64,000 nt of DNA from contig NEEC01000031.1 of the NCBI GenBank assembly GCA_002189035.1, positions 234,691 through 298,690 on the forward strand, read 5' to 3'. Positions within the stretch are counted from its first letter, which is position 1. Every line of letters begins with the position of its first letter. The position numbers and the translations under genes were made by a program. This DNA comes from Utricularia gibba (Eukaryota; Plantae; Magnoliophyta). Shown here one piece after another: positions 2,966-64,000 of the stretch. The notes under the pieces are model-generated. The model ran no database searches. It was given only the letters and a program-made list of their open reading frames with translations, and had not been told where the DNA came from.

Positions 2966-5652
2966 CTATCTGTTCATCGGTTCCAGCTGAACCTCCGACG
3001 AAACGCCGTCCTTCTCTACGCTAACTCCGTTCGGACTCAACAGGTCAATGCCCTCTTCCTCACTGTTGCCCAATACCCAACTGCTTTGTCCGAGGCACTA
3101 ATGCCTCGGCGTCGACTCATCGCACGGAACTCTAAATAAACTACGAACAAGGCCGTGACGAGGAACCAGAGTATCAGAGCCCAGCTGAGTCCGTGGACGT
3201 TTTCGTCGCCGTACCGGTCCCCTAAATGCTTCATTCCACTGAAGAGAGCTGCAATGCCCAACCCAAAACCGCATCTCCCGGTTATGACATGGATATACTC
3301 CCATATCACCCTCTTTGTGGAAGCTGCTTCCCCGTTTGCAGGCTTTTTGGGTCTTAGGTACGCGTTGATCGGCTGGGCTACCGCCAGAAATATTGCCACC
3401 AACCCCAAAATAACATGTAAAGAATCGAGAATTAGACCACGCAGTTCAGCAACGGCAAAAAGAAATCCCAGGAAAACGATCGCCAATCCTGAGCGTTGCA
3501 TGTACACGTGAATCCGGAACCAACTATCATCCTTCATGTGTTTTAGGTACCTAGCAGCCAGAATCCCTCCGGGCAGCAAAATCCCCCATGCCAGAAACAT
3601 CATGAAACCATGTACAGCCAAAACTGGCCACAAGCCCTCCTCGGCTTCTGCAGAGCCATGCATCAGCAGCACGCTCATCGGCCTCTTGCTGGTCATGAAA
3701 TGCATGTTCCTCTCGCTCAGGTTGCTAGCAGTGGCGGACCACTGAGCGCCCATGGCCCATATAACTTTCAAAGGAGATGAAGGATCAATTATATTGCTGC
3801 ACTCTGGCCTTCCCTTTCGATCACAACATGGATTCAGCGGACGTGTAAACTCCAGTGTGATAATGCTATTTTCAGATTTGCATCGTACATATGTCAAGTT
3901 CTCCTGTGTTGGATGCACATTTGAAGCATCCCTTCCATCAATCCAGTAAGTGCTCACATTTCCACCACCACTTTCGCCAATGTACCCCACGTAAACGTAG
4001 CTATTCACCATCCCACGGCCAAATCCGATTGCAAGATAGCCACTTTTCTTCTCAGCTCTCGCAGCAATGGAGATTGAATTCTCTGACAAAGTCCAGAAGA
4101 ACATAACTTGCTGATCATCCAACGCAACACTGTTATTATACATGTCTGGCAAACCTCCATCCACCACCTGGACTTTCCATCCCATTTTCGGCGTGAAAAG
4201 AGAATGGTAGTAAACAAGATCCGGCGTGTTTCTATCAGGTGCCCATGTCAACTCTGTTGGACTTGCTGGAACACCTTCTGCTTCTGGACCCCAAAATATA
4301 TAGTTTCTGACATGTTTCTCAAAGTTGCGTTCCCACCAATAGGATCCGATGTGATATAAAATGCCACATCATGTCCAGCTTGTATCGAAAACTTCACTGG
4401 AACACCCCTCTCTACCCTCAAAAGAGGAGCTTCTTTCTTGTTAATATAAAGAACTTTCGTAGGATTCGGGGGTTCGGATAGTGCAATGCCGGGCCACTCG
4501 ATATAATGATCGGATCCTTTTTATCAGCAATAACAAGATCCTGGTCCTCTTTATCCACAGCATCAAGTGGTCCTATACAATCATTTCTATGCTCAGATAT
4601 GTTAAGCCTCAAATGACCAAAACTTCCACCATGATTCTGAGGAAGGTAGAAAGGACGAATACTATCTGGTGGCTTCATCGAGCCAGTAGCCCATATCACA
4701 ACCATATTTTCCTTGGGATCAACTTTGATGTCATAGTTGGTATCATTAGATTGCAATTGCCTCCTGTACCTGATAAATGATACTCCATCGCTTCTATGCC
4801 ATAGACTAAGCTCGTGTCATTTTCCAGGCCACTGGAAACAGAAGTATTATAGATTGTATCCGGACAAACACCCTGAACAGTTCCATCCTGATTTTTCGTG
4901 CATTCAGTCATTTTTGTAATATAATAATCATGGGCAAATGGCAAGCCATCATTATCAAAGCCTGCAACAACAACATCACTCCCTATCATCAAAGAACCTG
5001 AAGCATTGGGCTTTGCCCAACCAAAAGCCATGTAACCATCAATTTCAACAGTAGCCTCCAAAGCAATTTCCATGGAATCATTTCCAGTTTCAAAATTCCA
5101 CCACATCCGATATGTATCCAACAAAACTATACAATTTCTTAGAGCAGTAAGTGGTTGGACTATTGATGGATTCACCCCACCATCTGGAGAGTAATTACTC
5201 AACAAAACATGGCCAAAATCAGAAGATGTTGGAACATCCCAAACTGCAACAACTTCGATTTGATCCCAAGTCAAATTATCCCGCAAATGAACAATAAAGC
5301 TCTCATTTTTGAATGTCTGATTAAGAGGAAAATCTGAAATGATGAAGCCATTAGTGAGATTTTGAAAGTCATCCCCAGCTGCACCCCACCAGTGGACATC
5401 AGACCCCGGGAGCATATCAAACTGAGAAACCCGAAACGAACAGCCATCGAGGATGGAAAACTGACCACGAAGCTGATGCTGAACCATTGTAAATTGTGAG
5501 GTAAAGTTGAGAAGAGACGAATTGGTCAAATGGCATCCCATACCCGGATCAGAATAGGAGAGATGAATAAAACCCAGGAGAACACATGAAATGAAGAGAG
5601 CGGTTGGGGCCATAATGAGAGACTGGCTACGAGGGATCGTACTCCGTCCCAT
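2966..5652 (-). CDS. Cytochrome b561, DM13 and DOMON domain protein (At5g54830-like); four apparent 1-bp frameshifts
   Basis: Signal peptide, DM13 (QHQLRGQFSILDGCSFRVSQFDML), two DOMON domains (GYMAFGW, GYLAIGFG) and cyt b561 (AVHGFMMFLAWGILLPGGILAARYLKH). ORFs 4696-5652, 4418-4756 and 3037-4251 join by 1-bp shifts at about 4800, 4470, 4290 and 3092. The corrected frame ends ..EVQLEPMNR* at 2966. Confidence 0.9.
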
Positions 5653-13391: not shown

Positions 13392-16068
13392 TTAGACCAA
13401 AATCGTGAGAAGCAAACCCATGGCTGAAACCAGGAGGAGAGGCCTCCTGCACATATATCCAGCCGGGTTTGCAGGGGGAGGGGGTTGTGCAGCATTGTGG
13501 CCCGGTGATGCCGGCTCAGTGGACTGGCCTTCCCTTGAGCATGTGAAGTTGCAACGGCTTGAGTGAACAACCCTGTAAACTCCACTGTTTGCGAGAAGAT
13601 AAACATCCTTGTTGTTATCTTGGCCGAAGGAAAAGATGTAGCTGAGAGAGGGGAACGACTGATTGGGAGCAAACGAGCAATTCAAAGGAGAATCTTGTGC
13701 GCAGTTGAACGGAATCCTGATGCTGGTGAAGTTTCCGCTGTTGCTAGGACTTTCTGTGCCTGCCCACATAGCGCTACCATAAAGATCCGCATACAAGTAC
13801 CTGCACATGCAAGAATTATAGAACCAGCCCTTCAAAAGAATTTCTGTGCCTGTCCAAGATGGTTGCTAGCTTTGGGACGGAGTTGTACCTTCCATACATA
13901 CAGGGATCAGTCATAGATCGATACACGTAGCCGCCAGTAATCGATGCGGAGCGTTCGTACGAGCTCACTTCTGAGTGATCATACCCCATGACAGGGAAGA
14001 TCAGCCTGATTGCATCTACATTGATATTGGGGCCAAGAGACTGAGTAGGAGTGTTGGGGTAATGGCCCTCGTATGCACGCCACCCATAATTTCCTTTTTT
14101 GGTGATCAAATCAACCTCCTCGTATACATCCTGTTGCAGTCAACTAGAATCAAAGTAAAAGCCGTGGCCATGACAACAAAAACTTATCACATGCTGCTGG
14201 GAATAACATAAGAGGAATTCAGTACCTGCCCCACGTCCCCGCACATGAAATATGAATTTCGCTCTGAATCAAAGCTACATCTCCATGGATTTCGGAAACC
14301 CAAAGACCATATCTCTTTCTGCGTATCTGGATATTCTCTGTAAGGGTTGTCCTTTGGAATAGAGTAGTTTCCCCATAGGTTAAGTTGAGCAGCCTCGGTT
14401 TCACCTAAAATAACATTGAACAAGTTGCATGCACAGCAGAATCAAGTCTCTGCTAGGAATATGAATATGCAGGATATATCACACAGAAGCATCTCACTTG
14501 GTAAATTGTCAACGTCAAACCTCATGATCTTCCCAAGCAGAGATTTCTTGTTCAAGGCGAAGTTATATGCGTCTCCTGTAGCCCCACCATCTCCCATCAT
14601 GAAGTACAAGTATCCATCGTCTGGTCCAAAAATTATTTGCCCTCCGTGGTGAGTTGTGAATGGGAGCCCCATAGTGAATATTCTGCGAACTTCCATAGGA
14701 TTACCTCTAGTTGCCTGAAAAAATAGCCCCTTGTATTATATTTTCATTCAGGCTAAGATAACTTGGGCGGTTTAGCACATACCATTGAAGGGTGTGAAGC
14801 TGTTCCATTTACGGTAAACTCGGAAATGACGCTATGGTACCGGCAGGGAGATGCACCGTTGACAGGAGTCAGGGTAGAGGGATCACACCCAACATCTGTA
14901 TTACATGCACATCTACCTACGCAGTCTGGCGACTTTTCCTTATCACAGTTGTAGGAAACAAAGAACCGGCCATTCTCAATAAATCTTGGATGAAAAGCAA
15001 TTCCAAGCAGACCAAATTCATTATCAAAATGAACTTCATCTGTTAAATCTAGAAAAGGTCTGGCCTCATCAAGCTCCAGCACCCCACCTGAACCTATTTC
15101 AGGAATGGTTGCCAACCAAATCCTTCCTGCCTGGTTTGCAAACAATGCCCTGTTAGAGCCATCAGGGTGAGCAGCCATGTCTAAGAATGACCCATTTCCA
15201 ATTTTCTCTAGGCACAAACCACTTGGGGGGCTAGCAACATCAGTCACATTTAACACCACCGGTGATCCGCTAAAGCAAGGTAATCCATCAGCCGAAGCTC
15301 CACCAAGTGCTCCACAAAAATCTGTTTCTGAATCCCAGATATCACTCAGCTTGGTGGAATTCGAATTTGTCAGTGCTCCTGCTTGGCCTTGTAATGACGC
15401 AGCAAATGGCGAGTTCCAGATAGACAAGTTTCGGCAAGCATTCCATACAACAGAGCAAAAGTTGACAGTTGCTTGGTTTGACTGCGTAGAATTCGGAGAA
15501 ACTGTGGAGTTACACAGAACTGGAAGATCTCGAGGCGCGGAGGACACTCTGTAAAGTTCAGCTGAAAATGGGTCGCATCTCTGTAAATCACATGATACAG
15601 GATAAATGTTATAAGCAAAGAATATATCAAAGATGCACTAGATATTATTGCAAACATACATAACAGAAGGAAGAGCTCAAAACCAACTTCACAATTCGCC
15701 ATTTTTATTACCGCGCAAATGATCGCTTTAACAATAGAAGCACAGCTCTGATCGGTAACGTTCATTGAGTCGAACTGCAACTGCAACTGCTGCTCCTTCC
15801 CGTAGTTGCAACATGTTTTTCCCTCATAGCCGGAGCAAAAATTCAGTCTAGACCTTGGAATAAATGGCGCTTCTGCAACAAAAAACGGTAAAGAAAATTC
15901 AACAAGGAACTCTCGCCCAACGAGTGAAGAGAAACGCCATAAACAATTCATTCGTGTAAGAAGCACACCTGAATTAGCACATAGGGGCAAAGCAGAACGA
16001 GAACCGAGGAATTGCAGCAGCACCAAACTCACGTATGATACAAAAAAAACGTAGCGGCTGCATATCAT
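13392..16068 (-). CDS. HIPL1: HIPL1-like protein (glucose/sorbosone dehydrogenase fold, probable GPI anchor)
   Basis: Signal peptide + LPLC, LCLEKIGNGSFLDMAAHPDGSNR, HHGGQIIFGPDDGYLYFMMGDGG, WSLGFRNPWRCSFDS and a hydrophobic C-terminus. Confidence 0.9.
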
Positions 16069-17069
16069 GATTCGGATACCGAAGGTGCAAGAGGACAGCA
16101 CAATCAAGAAACTCCCTTTCTAACATCAACAAGTCAGGAAAAAAAGATATATCTTTTTTTCAAACTCGCGAAAAAGTGTCCTCTTTTCAGATTGGATCAT
16201 TCAACCCCTCTTCATTTCTCACCTACTTCCAAGAAAACTACCAACACGAGAACCACATACCAAATCTTTAGTCTTTTTATCTTCGCAGCTGTCACTTTTG
16301 ACTTGACCCATGACAGCCAGATGAGCAAGCATATGGCATGGAGGCCATGGCTAGCCGAAGATATACAGGCACAATCATCAAACACAGGATCATCAAACGT
16401 AGTTTGTTTTAAAAATGACAGGACAGTCAACGAATATCAAGCTCCCTCGGAGGTCCGTCGTTTCGAGGGATCTGCGATTTGACGATGCTATTTTTTGTAA
16501 GAATTCTGAAGAGTAAAGTAAATGTAACTAGTGTGTGGCGCGTAGAGCTCGCGAGGAGCTATAATTGTGGGAGAATTTATCCCCGTAGTATCGCGATGGG
16601 CTCTTACCTTGTTAAATCTTCACGCCTCATTCAGTGTTCTTCTCAGCTTGATATCCACCCCCAGTTTCCGTAACTATTCCGGGCGATGGACTTTTTGTCC
16701 GGCAAATAATGACTCTTTGATTCATGGTCGACTCCCTGGTCTTAATGGAGGAGATTATTGTAATAATTTGGTCGTGATTGATAGTTAATGGGTTAGTATG
16801 TCTGCTCCGCAAACGCCAGCTGTATTTATCGATCTCAGAACTTGTGCTCTTTAAGCCTATTAAACAAGAAGGGCGGGTAAATGTTGTTTACATCAATGAA
16901 TATCGCAGGATCCATGGATCTGGAGTTGCCGACGCAGAGATACAAATCTCCAGTGACTTTGTGGCAGAGAAACTTCAACAATAGGGTAGAGCAATGGGGA
17001 TGGATTAACCAAGGACTTGTGTCCCAATCTTGAGAAAAAAATTTTCACCCTTCATTGCTCGACATATGG

Positions 17070-58008: not shown

Positions 58009-59163
58009 TTGCTCCTGAAGCAATAGGAAGGCTCGTCCTAATAGCGGAGATCAAAACGATTCAAACTGCATCGACCCAGAAACTTTCATGAGTGCACTGC
58101 AATGACAAGATAAAAGTTCGCTCTTCAAGATACACGTATCCTATATTTTCCTTTTTTCCAACGCATAAACTATATTCTGCGAATGAGTTAACCATAACTT
58201 CTCCTTTCCTATTCAATTCTTTACTCTAGGGGAGAAAGTTATATCTAGCAATCGAAGCAAAAAATCAATGGTTCAAATCAAGACAGCACCGTCAACATCT
58301 AAAGAAGCACTGAAAAGCCTAACTTATTCTCCAGCTTATACAGTCAGAGAGAAGGATATCACCTGTGGCGGCGAGTTACAGTTTAGCGGTAATGTTGAAG
58401 CTCGCGGTGAATAATGAAGCATTGTGCGGTCGATGTTATGTGACAAATGCCCTAGTCCCAATAATTTCACGAACGTTCGGCCCATTCGCACTGCCTGTTC
58501 TTAGACATGTCTGCCCTTTTCCGATGCTTTCGCATTTTAAAGAAAACTTCCTCTGCACGATAGGTCACGGCATCTCACATTTCCAAATGCTTGTTCTCTG
58601 ATGGGCAATACCTAAGCTTCTTTATTTCCAATTTCTCGAAGGGCGGAAAACTGGAGTTTGTTTAGAAAAGGCTTGGCGGGTAAGTAGGCAAACTGGAGTT
58701 AGTAATTGGTCATTGTACTTCCATTTTGCACTTGTGTTTTGGGGTTTGAGTTGGATGCTGTGATTGCCTTATTTATTTGTTTGGGACGTCCCTTTATTTT
58801 TGAGCAAAACTCATGCCTATTCCTCATATTTAACAACACTATTCGTAAAAACTTTAGTTAGGGTAGTGCAGTCGCGCGGGGGAGAAACATCTGAAATCTC
58901 GCTACGGTTTGTGAAACATAAATCAGAATCAGATTGAAATATTCTATTGGATTGCTCATATTTAACGCGAAGATAGAATTGATGGTTTGAGGCAATTCCT
59001 AAAACCCAAACCGCAACCCCAAGGTGGGCCATTAAAGGGCTTGAAGGGGCGAAAGACACCTCCTAACGTCCGAGTTTTCTCTCCTTTGCGTGACACAGCT
59101 GTGGTGGGTAGGTCAACTCAATCTCTCTCGGGAACTCGCTCACGATCTGCGATCTTAGGGGGA

Positions 59164-62100
59164 ATGTTGCGGCGGGGAACGCATCGTATCATTTGCGCTC
59201 TTCTTCTCCTTGCTCTTCTGCCGCTCAATGCAATCGCTCGCCCATTCTTTTTTGTACTCTCTGAGGATGACCTTTCTGATCCCAATCAACCCTCGCCTGC
59301 TGAAGACGTCTCTGAGTTTGACGACTTTCCTGAGACCGATTCACAGCCTGATTATGTTTTCGATCCCGGCTCATGGTCCCCAATCTTTGAACCAGATACC
59401 AATTTCGGGAACCCAAACGCTAGCGATGACGGTGATATAATTTATTACAGCGGAGTGAAAAAGATTGTCGAGGCTTCCAGGGGGGAATTTAGGCTCATGG
59501 AAGAGGCGGCAGCAGAGATTCAGGCGGCAGCGGATATGGGGAACCCACAGGGCCAATCTGCGATCGGCTTTTTGTACAGCATGGGAATTTCCAGAGAGAG
59601 GAGTGAAAGCAAGGCCTTTCTGCATCACTACTTTGCCTCGCAAGGGGGCAATATGCAGTCAAAATTGGCTCTGGCTTACACTTATTATCGGCGTGAAGTA
59701 CGCTCCTTTCCTGCATATTCATTTAGTCGGATGCCATCAGCTGTGATTTTATATTTCTGTTTCATCATCATGACATCCGAACTATGGTTTTCGTTTGACG
59801 AAGTTATCACTCGTACTACGTAATCTATCGTTTAGGTGGTGAAACCCGATATATACTTCTGAAAGGCATTTGATGACTATGATATGCCCCATTGAGGAAA
59901 TGGGAAAATAGAGGAAAACTAGCGTGTTGAATATTGATCAAATTACTTGTTAGGATTTTTAGTTAATGAGATTTATGGTCTGGTTTTTTTCGGTGCAGAT
60001 GTATGAGAAGGCAGTTGGGCTTTACTCAGAATTGGCGGAAGTAGCCATGAATAGTTTTCTCATTTCAAAGGACTCGCCTGTTATTGAGCCTGTGAGAATA
60101 CATATTGGTGCAGAGGAGAATAAAGAAGCTCTTCGGAAGTCTAGGGGAGAGGAGGATGAAGATTTTCAGATTTTAGAATATCAAGCACAAAAAGGAAATG
60201 CAGGGGCCATGCATAAAATTGGAATGTTTTATTACTTCGGTCTGAGAGGTGTTAGGCGTGATCATGCCAAAGCATTGCGTTGGTTCTCCAAAGCAGTGGA
60301 GAGAGGTGAGCCTAGGTCAATGGAACTTCTTGGAGAGATATACGCAAGAGGAGCAGGAGTTGAACGAAATTATACTAAGGCGTTAGAATGGCTGACGCTT
60401 GCATCAAGGCACCAACTTATCTCCGCTTACAATGGAATGGGATATTTATATGCAAAAGGCTATGGAGTTGACAAAAAAAATTATACCACGGTTTGTCCTA
60501 ATTGTTGTTAAGGATTTTCTTGTTCTTCACCAAGCTATTTTCTCAAATATTCTTTCTTTTTCACCACCTGCACTTGCCCATTGCTTCTTTCAACTAATGT
60601 TTGTTCCATTTCACCTCACACTGCAGTTATGTTATGCTCTTGAAAAATTGAAAATATGGAAATATGCTTTGTTTACAGGCAAAAGAGTACTTTGACAAAG
60701 CGGCTGAGAATGATGAACCTGGAGGGTTCTACAACCTTGGGGTTATGTATCTTAAGGGCCTTGGGGTGAAGCGTGACTTGAAAATAGCAACAAAATATTT
60801 TGGTCTTGCTGCTAATTCAGGTCAACCAAAAGCGTATTACCAATTGGCAAAGATGTTTCATACTGGAGTGGGGCACAAAAAAAATCTTCCTCTGGCAAGT
60901 GTTTAGCTCTTCATTCCAGCAGTTTTATCCTAATATGCCTTTTTCAGACAAAGTAAATTTGGAAATTAGTGTTGGTCTCCTATTCTTTTTTTTTTTGGAA
61001 ATTATGATTGTTGGAATTTCTTCCATCCCTTTGAGTTCCTTATTCAGACAAAGTAATGTCCTGGGATTTTTTGTTTGCAGTTTAATTAACAAGTGTACTG
61101 CTAACCCAACTTACATGAGTAGGCTTTACCATTACCTTTTAGAACATGCAATTTATGAATTGTTATATATTTCTTATAAATTAAAAATCATTGCTTTTGC
61201 TTTTTTCATTGTGGGATTTCCCACATTATCATCACTCTCTCAAAAGGTTGACTGTTAAAATACATGATGGTCAAATTGGATACTATTAAGGTAATCATGT
61301 CAAGCCATCAGTCATTTGCTCTAGAATCGTGTTATATATTTATGGTATCAGAATTATGAGGAATGAGCACAAACCAAGACATGGGGATAGTATAGCTCAT
61401 GATTTGTACTTTGTACTCTTGCATTTCTTTCTGGTAGGACTATTTTGGGTTTAATGTTTTTGAGTGCACAATCAAGAACTAGTTTACTGGTGGAGTACTT
61501 ATATCCTCCATTCCTTTTTTGATCAGTCTAGGATATAGTTCCATCCATTCTCCTGATTTGTTATGCGTTTGTGTTTCTTTCTTGACTGAAGTGTGCATTT
61601 TTTTGTGCAATTGGTGTTCTTATTCCTGGTACTTAATCTGTAGGCTACCGCATTATATAAATTGGTTGCTGAGCGTGGACCATGGAGTTCCTTGTCTAGA
61701 TGGGCTCTTCAGTCATATCTGAAAGGTGATATTGGCAAGTCATTGCTTTTATATTCAAGAATGGCAGAGCTAGGGTATGAGGTGGCTCAAAGTAACGCTG
61801 CTTGGATTCTTGACAAGTATGCGGACCTTAGCATTTGCTTGGGTGAGTTTGGGTTGTGCACTGATGCAGAAAGGCATCAACGTGCACATGGGTTGTGGTG
61901 GAGGGCCTCAGAACAGGGCAATGAACATGCCGCTCTTTTGATTGGGGATGCTTATTACTACGGTCGGGTATGTTAACTGTGGCATTTCTTGGTTCATTTG
62001 CAAGGAATTTCCATGGCTTTATTCGTCACATGGGCTTACTTTCTTATTACAGAAGTCTTTGCTGGCTCCAATTTTAATGGGTTTTGTTGTTTTTCTTTTT

Positions 62101-62854
62101 CGTTCGCTTATAAAGGGTGCAGAACGGGACTATGATCGTGCCGCTGAGGCTTATATGCATGCTAAATCTCAATCCAATGCCCAGGCTATGTTCAACTTGG
62201 GTTACATGCATGAGCATGGCCAAGGTCTGCCACTGGATCTTCACCTTGCCAAGCGTTATTATGATCAGGCTTTAGAAGCGGATTCCACTGCAAAATTGCC
62301 TGTATCATTGGCCCTTGCCAGCTTGTGGATAAGAAGGAACTATGCCGATACATTTATTGTGAGTTATGCTTTCTGGCATCTCGGTTGGGGATATAGGATG
62401 GTTTTTTGCGTGTGCATGAAGGTTGTTTGTCCCTTTTTGAAGCATCCTGATGCGTCAACTGTTTTATTTCTACTGAATGCAGCTTTTTGTTCTCTTTAAA
62501 TCTTGATGTTCCATGTGGATGAATCACATTGTTACTGCATATAGGCTTTATAAGACACTTTGATGAAGGAAATAAGCAAGAGGCATGCTTGATTAATATT
62601 TGTAGTAGGATGCTTCCTGAACCTGTTCTGTGTTGCAGGTTGGCATGATCGATTCACTTCCGGAACTGTATCCTAGGGTGGAAGCGTGGGTAGAGAATGT
62701 GATATTGGAAGAGGGTAATGCAACTATTCTTACACTCTTCCTCTGCCTTGTAACTGTTCTGTACTTGCGGGAGCGTCAAAGAAGACATGCTGTTCCTGTA
62801 CCTGGTGTTTTAGACCCCCTACAGCAACCTCCTGAGGCTCTACCTGTTAGATAG
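59164..62854 (+). CDS. HRD3A: ERAD component HRD3A / SEL1L (Sel1 repeats)
   Basis: Signal peptide, [91 protein letters not shown] and C-terminal [22 protein letters not shown]. Confidence 0.95.
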
Positions 62855-63912
62855 AGAAATTTTAGAATCTCCTCAAACTTGCTACTTCTTTCATGCTGCC
62901 TTTTACACTAGCTGTTTAAAAACTGGGAAGAAGAGTATGATGCCATCCTGGATGAAACATATATTAGAAGTAAAGCTGACGAGAATCGTTGTTACATCAA
63001 GTTGATGTAAATAAAAAGTATTTAATTTATTTGAGTTTAAATAAAGTTGATGTACATAAATTAATTTTTTAAATAGTATTTAATTAGTAAAATTAGAATT
63101 AAGGTGATATTAAGTAAAGTAAAGGAGGTGATATTAAGTATAAGCATCCTCATCCTCATCCTCTTGTGAGTATAAGCATAGAGATGAATGCTACAGAGAC
63201 TCTGTTGTGCTAATCACTATATAAAAGGCGATTGGGATTGAGGTTGAAACCTCAACAGACCAACAGCTAAAATAGCAGCAGCGTTTGTCGTTTTATAGGT
63301 TTTGGTTAAGAGCCCTAAGTTTTCTAGATGCTTTAGCGAAGCTTACATGCCAGACTTTTCCATCGGATCTGTATCTTGAAGAATTTAGAGATTGATTGGA
63401 TCAGCAAGTTGGGTAAGATGGCGCACACAAGAGTCAAAGCTATGAACAAGGTTGACGCCCCGAGAGCTGGCGCGACCGAAGGGGCCAGGGCATTCTTCAG
63501 AAGCAAACAAAGCGAGGTGCCGTAGACCCGAGAAATCCGTTTAATTCAAGAGCGATCCCAACACCCTACATGAATATAGTAGGCTTGCTGAATTACACCC
63601 TTGCCCTCATTGCTGCAACACCTGAGAAAAAAGCTCACATCCCCTATGGCCTATTTCTATGCGTTGTCTTATGTTGATGTGAGCGACGTAGCTGTTCCTT
63701 TTGGTTTCAAATTGCGCGTTCTCCTACACGCCCATTGCCAGGCGATTTTCGGAGTGTTTAGCGTTTGGGATTTAATGTTCATAATTTAGGAATAAGCGTC
63801 TAGCGCTTAGATTCCTAAAAGGTACTTTCTCACAAAATGTCTCACGGTTTATACAGCTCATTTGGATGTAGGAATTAGTTTCCGAAGTTCTCGATTCAGG
63901 TTGAATATTTTC

Positions 63913-64000
63913 GGGGTTTATGGTTTAGGGTTTCGGATTTAGGGTTCCAGGGTTCCAGGGTTCCAGGGTTCCAGGGTTTCAGGGTTCCAGGGTTCCAGGG
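63913..64000 (+). repeat. Telomere-type array: degenerate units and 2x TTTAGGG, then 6x TTCCAGGG with one TTTCAGGG, running to the window end
   Basis: TTTAGGG at 63924 and 63938; TTCCAGGG at 63945, 63953, 63961, 63969, 63985 and 63993; TTTCAGGG at 63977. The G-rich strand points toward the end. Confidence 0.85.

Follow-up and report, generated by a model that had tools for sequence, protein, structure and literature searches.

The last 88 bases of the contig are a chromosome end, and the block of 8-mers with which they close, built almost entirely from TTCCAGGG, is probably the degenerate/variant zone, specific to this end, that forms the base of an ordinary plant telomere of TTTAGGG type. 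We infer a mutational origin for the TTCCAGGG block, and canonical or TT[T/C]AGGG repeats beyond the end of the contig. The anatomy of the array favours this reading, with degenerate units, a homogeneous variant block and the G-strand pointing outward. By analogy, the telomere architecture seen in Arabidopsis HiFi reads argues for it as well, and two metagenome contigs, in which TTCCAGGG appears to occur independently in nature, point in the same direction. The kind of structure is already known, and only the unit TTCCAGGG is new.

The array occupies positions 63913-64000 of the 64,000-nucleotide stretch analysed here (the window) and was read directly from the sequence, with the contig end at 64000 assumed. 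It opens on the plus strand with GGGG (63913-63916), followed by the degenerate unit TTTATGG (63917-63923), an exact canonical plant unit, TTTAGGG (63924-63930), a further degenerate unit, TTTCGGA (63931-63937), and a second exact TTTAGGG (63938-63944), so that two of the four 7-mers before the switch are canonical and two are degenerate. At 63945 the 7-mers change abruptly to 8-mers: four copies of TTCCAGGG (63945-63976), one copy of TTTCAGGG (63977-63984) and two more copies of TTCCAGGG (63985-64000), all on the plus strand, where the end of the window cuts the block. The visible variant block (63945-64000) therefore comprises 56 bases in seven 8-mers, of which six are identical. A first-pass annotation of this DNA had described an 8-mer that replaces TTTAGGG distally at the window end, which is what the seven 8-mers, including the single TTTCAGGG, display. 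It had also described an array grading from degenerate and canonical units into a near-uniform 8-mer; both components are present in that order, but the gradient is not, since the switch at 63945 is sharp.

The periodicity of the block was confirmed by Tandem Repeats Finder, which reports a period of 8 at 63941-64000, with 7.5 copies, 96% matches and a score of 113. A 16-mer made of two units has six matches in the block and forms no other array in the window, where shuffled sequences lead one to expect 0.01 matches; dimers resembling TTTAGGG are confined to 63917-63944 in a search of the window. The G-rich strand points 5' to 3' toward the window end, the orientation of a true right-hand chromosome end. 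The 8-mers keep the phase and orientation of the TTTAGGG units, and the GGG and TT of the unit are common to both. TTCCAGGG lies at an edit distance of two from TTTAGGG; it is obtained from TTCAGGG by one inserted base and from TTTCAGGG by one T-to-C change, and its C-strand form is CCCTGGAA. Thus, a few substitutions or small indels separate the variant units from the canonical one, and the units form a locally homogenised run, as in a proximal variant zone. The terminal position and the outward G-strand are likewise those of a proximal telomere zone, with the contig end at 64000 assumed. Seen from the centromere side, the degenerate and canonical units (63917-63944) come before the variant units (63945-64000), and the visible sequence stops there. 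We also note that TTTCGGA at 63931-63937 resembles the TTTCGG(G) telomere units of some Mimulus species, which belong to Lamiales too; as a single unit, this is probably a coincidence.

The array is preceded by a non-coding subtelomeric spacer of ~1.06 kb (62855-63912), which holds short ORFs only and matches no Rfam family. The last gene before the chromosome end is an HRD3/SEL1-like (Sel1-repeat) gene on the plus strand (58987-62854). Its exons are intact, and tblastn finds no frame breaks in those at 60745-60900, 61644-61967, 62113-62367 and 62624-62842. The Rfam search of the whole window returned no family, and hence no telomerase RNA lies in the window. Protein matches of the window genes place the genome in Lamiales: the best matches of a cyclic Dof factor (CDF) gene are in Phlomoides, Paulownia and Buddleja, at no more than 48% identity, and an exon of a DOMON/cytochrome b561 gene is 80-85% identical to sequences of Erythranthe, Orobanche and Sesamum. 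Exact-protein look-ups with five ORFs of the window retrieved no independent assembly of the same end. When the exon ORF at 61942-62496, 1.5 kb from the end, was used in a word search, no match exceeded 87% identity, and for this reason the source species seems to be missing from the gene-called public assemblies.

The quality of the assembly can be judged from the DOMON/DM13/cytochrome b561 gene (At5g54830-like), which lies on the minus strand at 2969-5652 and is ~80% identical to the Erythranthe protein. With the Erythranthe, Anisodus and Hibiscus homologues as queries, tblastn resolves this 2.7-kb gene into five abutting pieces in frames -2, -1, -3, -2 and -1, that is, with four +1 frame changes, all in the same direction. 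The alignment is best restored by one placeholder base at each of 4798 (GG), 4469 (C5), 4290 (G4) and 3091 (GG). The error mode is therefore the loss of a single G or C in runs, even in runs of two bases. The broken frame appears to be the mark of assembly errors, and not of a pseudogene; both the HRD3 exons and the long second exon of the CDF gene are unbroken. The assembly appears to be of long-read type with residual deletions, and nanopore or PacBio CLR would both fit the indel signature. The first-pass annotation was right to see long-read-type errors here, and the four single-base losses in G/C runs of the DOMON/cytochrome b561 gene are of that type. Elsewhere in the window, the minus strand at 14753-16107 holds two ORFs (264 and 245 aa) that overlap by 178 bases in different frames; the gene in question matches GSDH (glucose/sorbosone dehydrogenase, HIPL1-like) weakly, and a further single-base loss like those above could account for the overlap.

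On the proximal-zone reading, the inner, centromere-side zone of the telomere would be copied by normal replication and would not be rebuilt by telomerase, so that its units would be free to mutate. TTCCAGGG may have been born from TTCAGGG through duplication of the C, or from TTTCAGGG through a change of T to C; the one TTTCAGGG unit within the block is itself a single change from TTCCAGGG. Slippage or unequal sister-chromatid exchange could then have multiplied a single mutated unit until it filled a small homogeneous block, and the contig would stop short of the distal array made by telomerase. As to the mode of slippage, a hairpin-driven process was considered and rejected, as folding of the block is no better than that of shuffled sequences on either strand (z = +2.15 and +0.72). 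Against the proximal-zone reading, the block comes from a single assembly of long-read type, in which indel errors are proven. In addition, TTCCAGGG is missing from the TeloBase supplement, which holds TTCAGGG and TTTCAGGG, and from the part of the Arabidopsis unit table covered here (PMC11406999). In the searched literature, neither TTCCAGGG nor CCCTGGAA is found as a telomere unit, the matches being primers or incidental. The first-pass annotation had likewise not recognised the 8-mer as a plant telomere.

Metagenome contigs were scanned for exact occurrences of three tandem TTCCAGGG units, and at least 120 contigs matched. Among the matches listed, most are plain minisatellites; at least 32 contigs carry ~85 conserved bases beside the array, after which the sequences diverge. 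To judge from these contigs, the family made up of (TTCCAGGG)n and the ~85-base stretch is a dispersed repeat and no telomere. Its loci include L001, L006, L009, L017, L027, L031 and L042 and about 25 more, mostly in contigs Ga0126342_*. The ~85 conserved bases hold a short hairpin (CCCAACAG..CTGTTGGG), with unrelated sequence beyond, and many contigs break inside the (TTCCAGGG)n array; the 14-kb L031 has no ORF of 250 aa or longer. The family may represent the end, made of simple repeats, of a non-autonomous mobile element belonging to the host organism.

Two other matches are of a different nature. Both L030 and L043, among the matches listed, end in long canonical CCCTAAA arrays, and are therefore true ends of eukaryotes with TTTAGGG-type telomeres. 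In both, blocks of three to four TTCCAGGG units lie within decayed TTTAGGG/TTCAGGG-type arrays, and in L030 the TTCCAGGG block directly adjoins runs of TTCAGGG/TGTAGGG. The presence of these blocks in the two contigs suggests that the unit is a natural product of TTTAGGG/TTCAGGG arrays and has arisen from them repeatedly. L030 (1-1951) and L043 (1-1000) are GC-rich environmental eukaryote contigs of 1.6-2 kb. Their subtelomeres mix decayed telomere-like repeats of either orientation into mosaics, which include higher-order runs of TTCAGGG/TGTAGGG.

Three other explanations of the block were weighed, of which a long-read artefact is the one that calls for the closest attention, although we regard it as unlikely. 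The true sequence would then be (TTTAGGG)n or a TT[T/C]AGGG mix, and miscalls in C-strand nanopore reads would have produced the block, or correct G-strand reads and miscalled C-strand reads would have been merged into a hybrid 8-mer consensus; a merger of TTTAGGG and CCCAGG could, in principle, yield TTCCAGGG. Nanopore reads of human telomeres call CCCTAA as CCCTGG or CTTCTT in a strand-specific manner, and CCCTAAA of Arabidopsis is called CCTGGG (Tan et al. 2022, PMC9414165). The strand specificity of telomere miscalls in the literature thus includes the Arabidopsis 7-mers (PMC9414165), and probably extends to Chenopodium, whose nanopore reads contain CCCTGGG, CCTGGG and TTTAAAA. The variant begins just where the array turns regular, and the assembly has lost four single bases from G/C runs within one 2.7-kb gene. 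The first-pass annotation had raised a base-calling artefact on similar grounds, and it was correct in that the assembly is error-prone and that the C-strand form resembles the CCCTAA-to-CCCTGG miscall. The likeness does not extend to identity: the observed C-strand unit, CCCTGGAA, matches no documented nanopore miscall, and the error motifs documented for CCCTAAA, namely CCTGGG or CCCTGGG, are of 6-7 nt and contain no A, as against the 8-mer. The 8-mer also requires the gain of a base, whereas the proven error mode is loss of G or C, and since this mode removes G/C it cannot make the extra C of TTCCAGGG six times. A systematic miscall should, moreover, repeat one motif at every end, while five other ends of the genome carry, on unverified readings, TTCAGGG, TTTCAGGG, TTCAGG or TTTATTAGGG. 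The occurrence of TTCCAGGG blocks in telomere-derived arrays of short, unrelated metagenome contigs likewise speaks against an artefact.

That the plant's telomerase adds TTCCAGGG here, and perhaps at further ends, is in our view very unlikely. The source would be a second RNA paralog whose template is of the CCCUGGAA type, or slippage on an unusual template. Plant motifs that contain C and are made by telomerase do exist: Genlisea hispidula has TTCAGG/TTTCAGG telomeres with matching RNA templates (PMC6765143), and Capsicum chinense makes TT[T/C]AGGG from two telomerase RNA paralogs. In Mimulus, also of Lamiales, the telomere motif was switched through duplication of the telomerase RNA gene. 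The variant does lie distal to canonical units in the array; its visible extent is, however, 56 bases at one end, within the usual size of a proximal variant zone (PMC11406999). The annotation had taken a proximal-old, distal-new order as the trace of a change in the telomerase RNA template. This argument needs the distal array, which lies outside the 88 visible bases, and a template change is not supported. Further still from the evidence is an origin outside the telomere, which we consider extremely improbable: the block would be an ordinary minisatellite, or a simple-repeat tail belonging to a mobile element, and would adjoin a few telomere-like units by chance. (TTCCAGGG)n is common as a plain minisatellite in metagenome contigs, and it adjoins the conserved ~85-nt stretch in at least 32 of them, mostly from one sample. 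The block in the window, in contrast, is in phase with TTTAGGG units, at the end of the sequence and in telomere orientation. A retroelement tail was also considered as the source of the block and rejected: the ~85-base flank conserved in the metagenomic family is missing from the window, with no similarity between it and the spacer at 62855-63912, and at contig ends the arrays of the family are oriented opposite to a telomere.

If the block is real, it adds one more unit type to the variant repeats that are well described from the base of plant telomeres, and it would provide an end-specific marker and a small case of local homogenisation; no new mechanism is called for. If it were made by telomerase, it would be a plant motif absent from the TeloBase supplement and the searched literature. 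In an assembly with proven errors, a contig end of fewer than 100 bases is no basis for inferring a telomere motif. On the interpretation as a whole, the caution of the first-pass annotation about an artefact was sound, and its two readings, a new motif or a base-calling artefact, left out the commonest explanation, that of an inner zone with degenerate units followed by variant units (PMC11406999).

Among known systems, the nanopore miscalls (Tan et al. 2022, PMC9414165) share with the block a G that follows CCCT on the C-rich strand in place of A. They differ from it in that none of the documented error repeats is an 8-mer that keeps AA. Capsicum chinense and Genlisea hispidula resemble the present case in having a cytosine within the T-tract of the telomere unit, and Genlisea belongs to Lamiales as well. 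In these plants, telomerase makes the motif at all ends from matching templates; this is in contrast to the 8-mer described here, which has two cytosines and is seen at one end over 56 bases.

The closest parallel is offered by the proximal telomere zones of Arabidopsis. HiFi reads reveal the telomere order there as degenerate, then variant, then canonical, with 462 unit types of 2-17 bp, 8-mers among them (PMC11406999). The unit table (Table S2), in the part covered here, lists TTCAGGG 359 times, and includes TTTCAGGG and many 8-mers (PMC11406999). Units are locally homogenised in patterns that are end-specific, and the telomerase RNA template is identical in 74 of 74 accessions; at those few rDNA ends where they occur, proximal variant zones measure 6-658 bp (PMC11406999). 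The two cases differ in that the distal canonical array is seen in Arabidopsis, whereas the visible sequence here ends in the variant block, and the Arabidopsis data are HiFi reads, whereas the present sequence is from a Lamiales plant in an error-prone long-read assembly. In both cases, the variant units are situated at the base of a TTTAGGG telomere in the order degenerate, then variant, lie one or two changes away from the canonical unit, and occur in runs of identical units.
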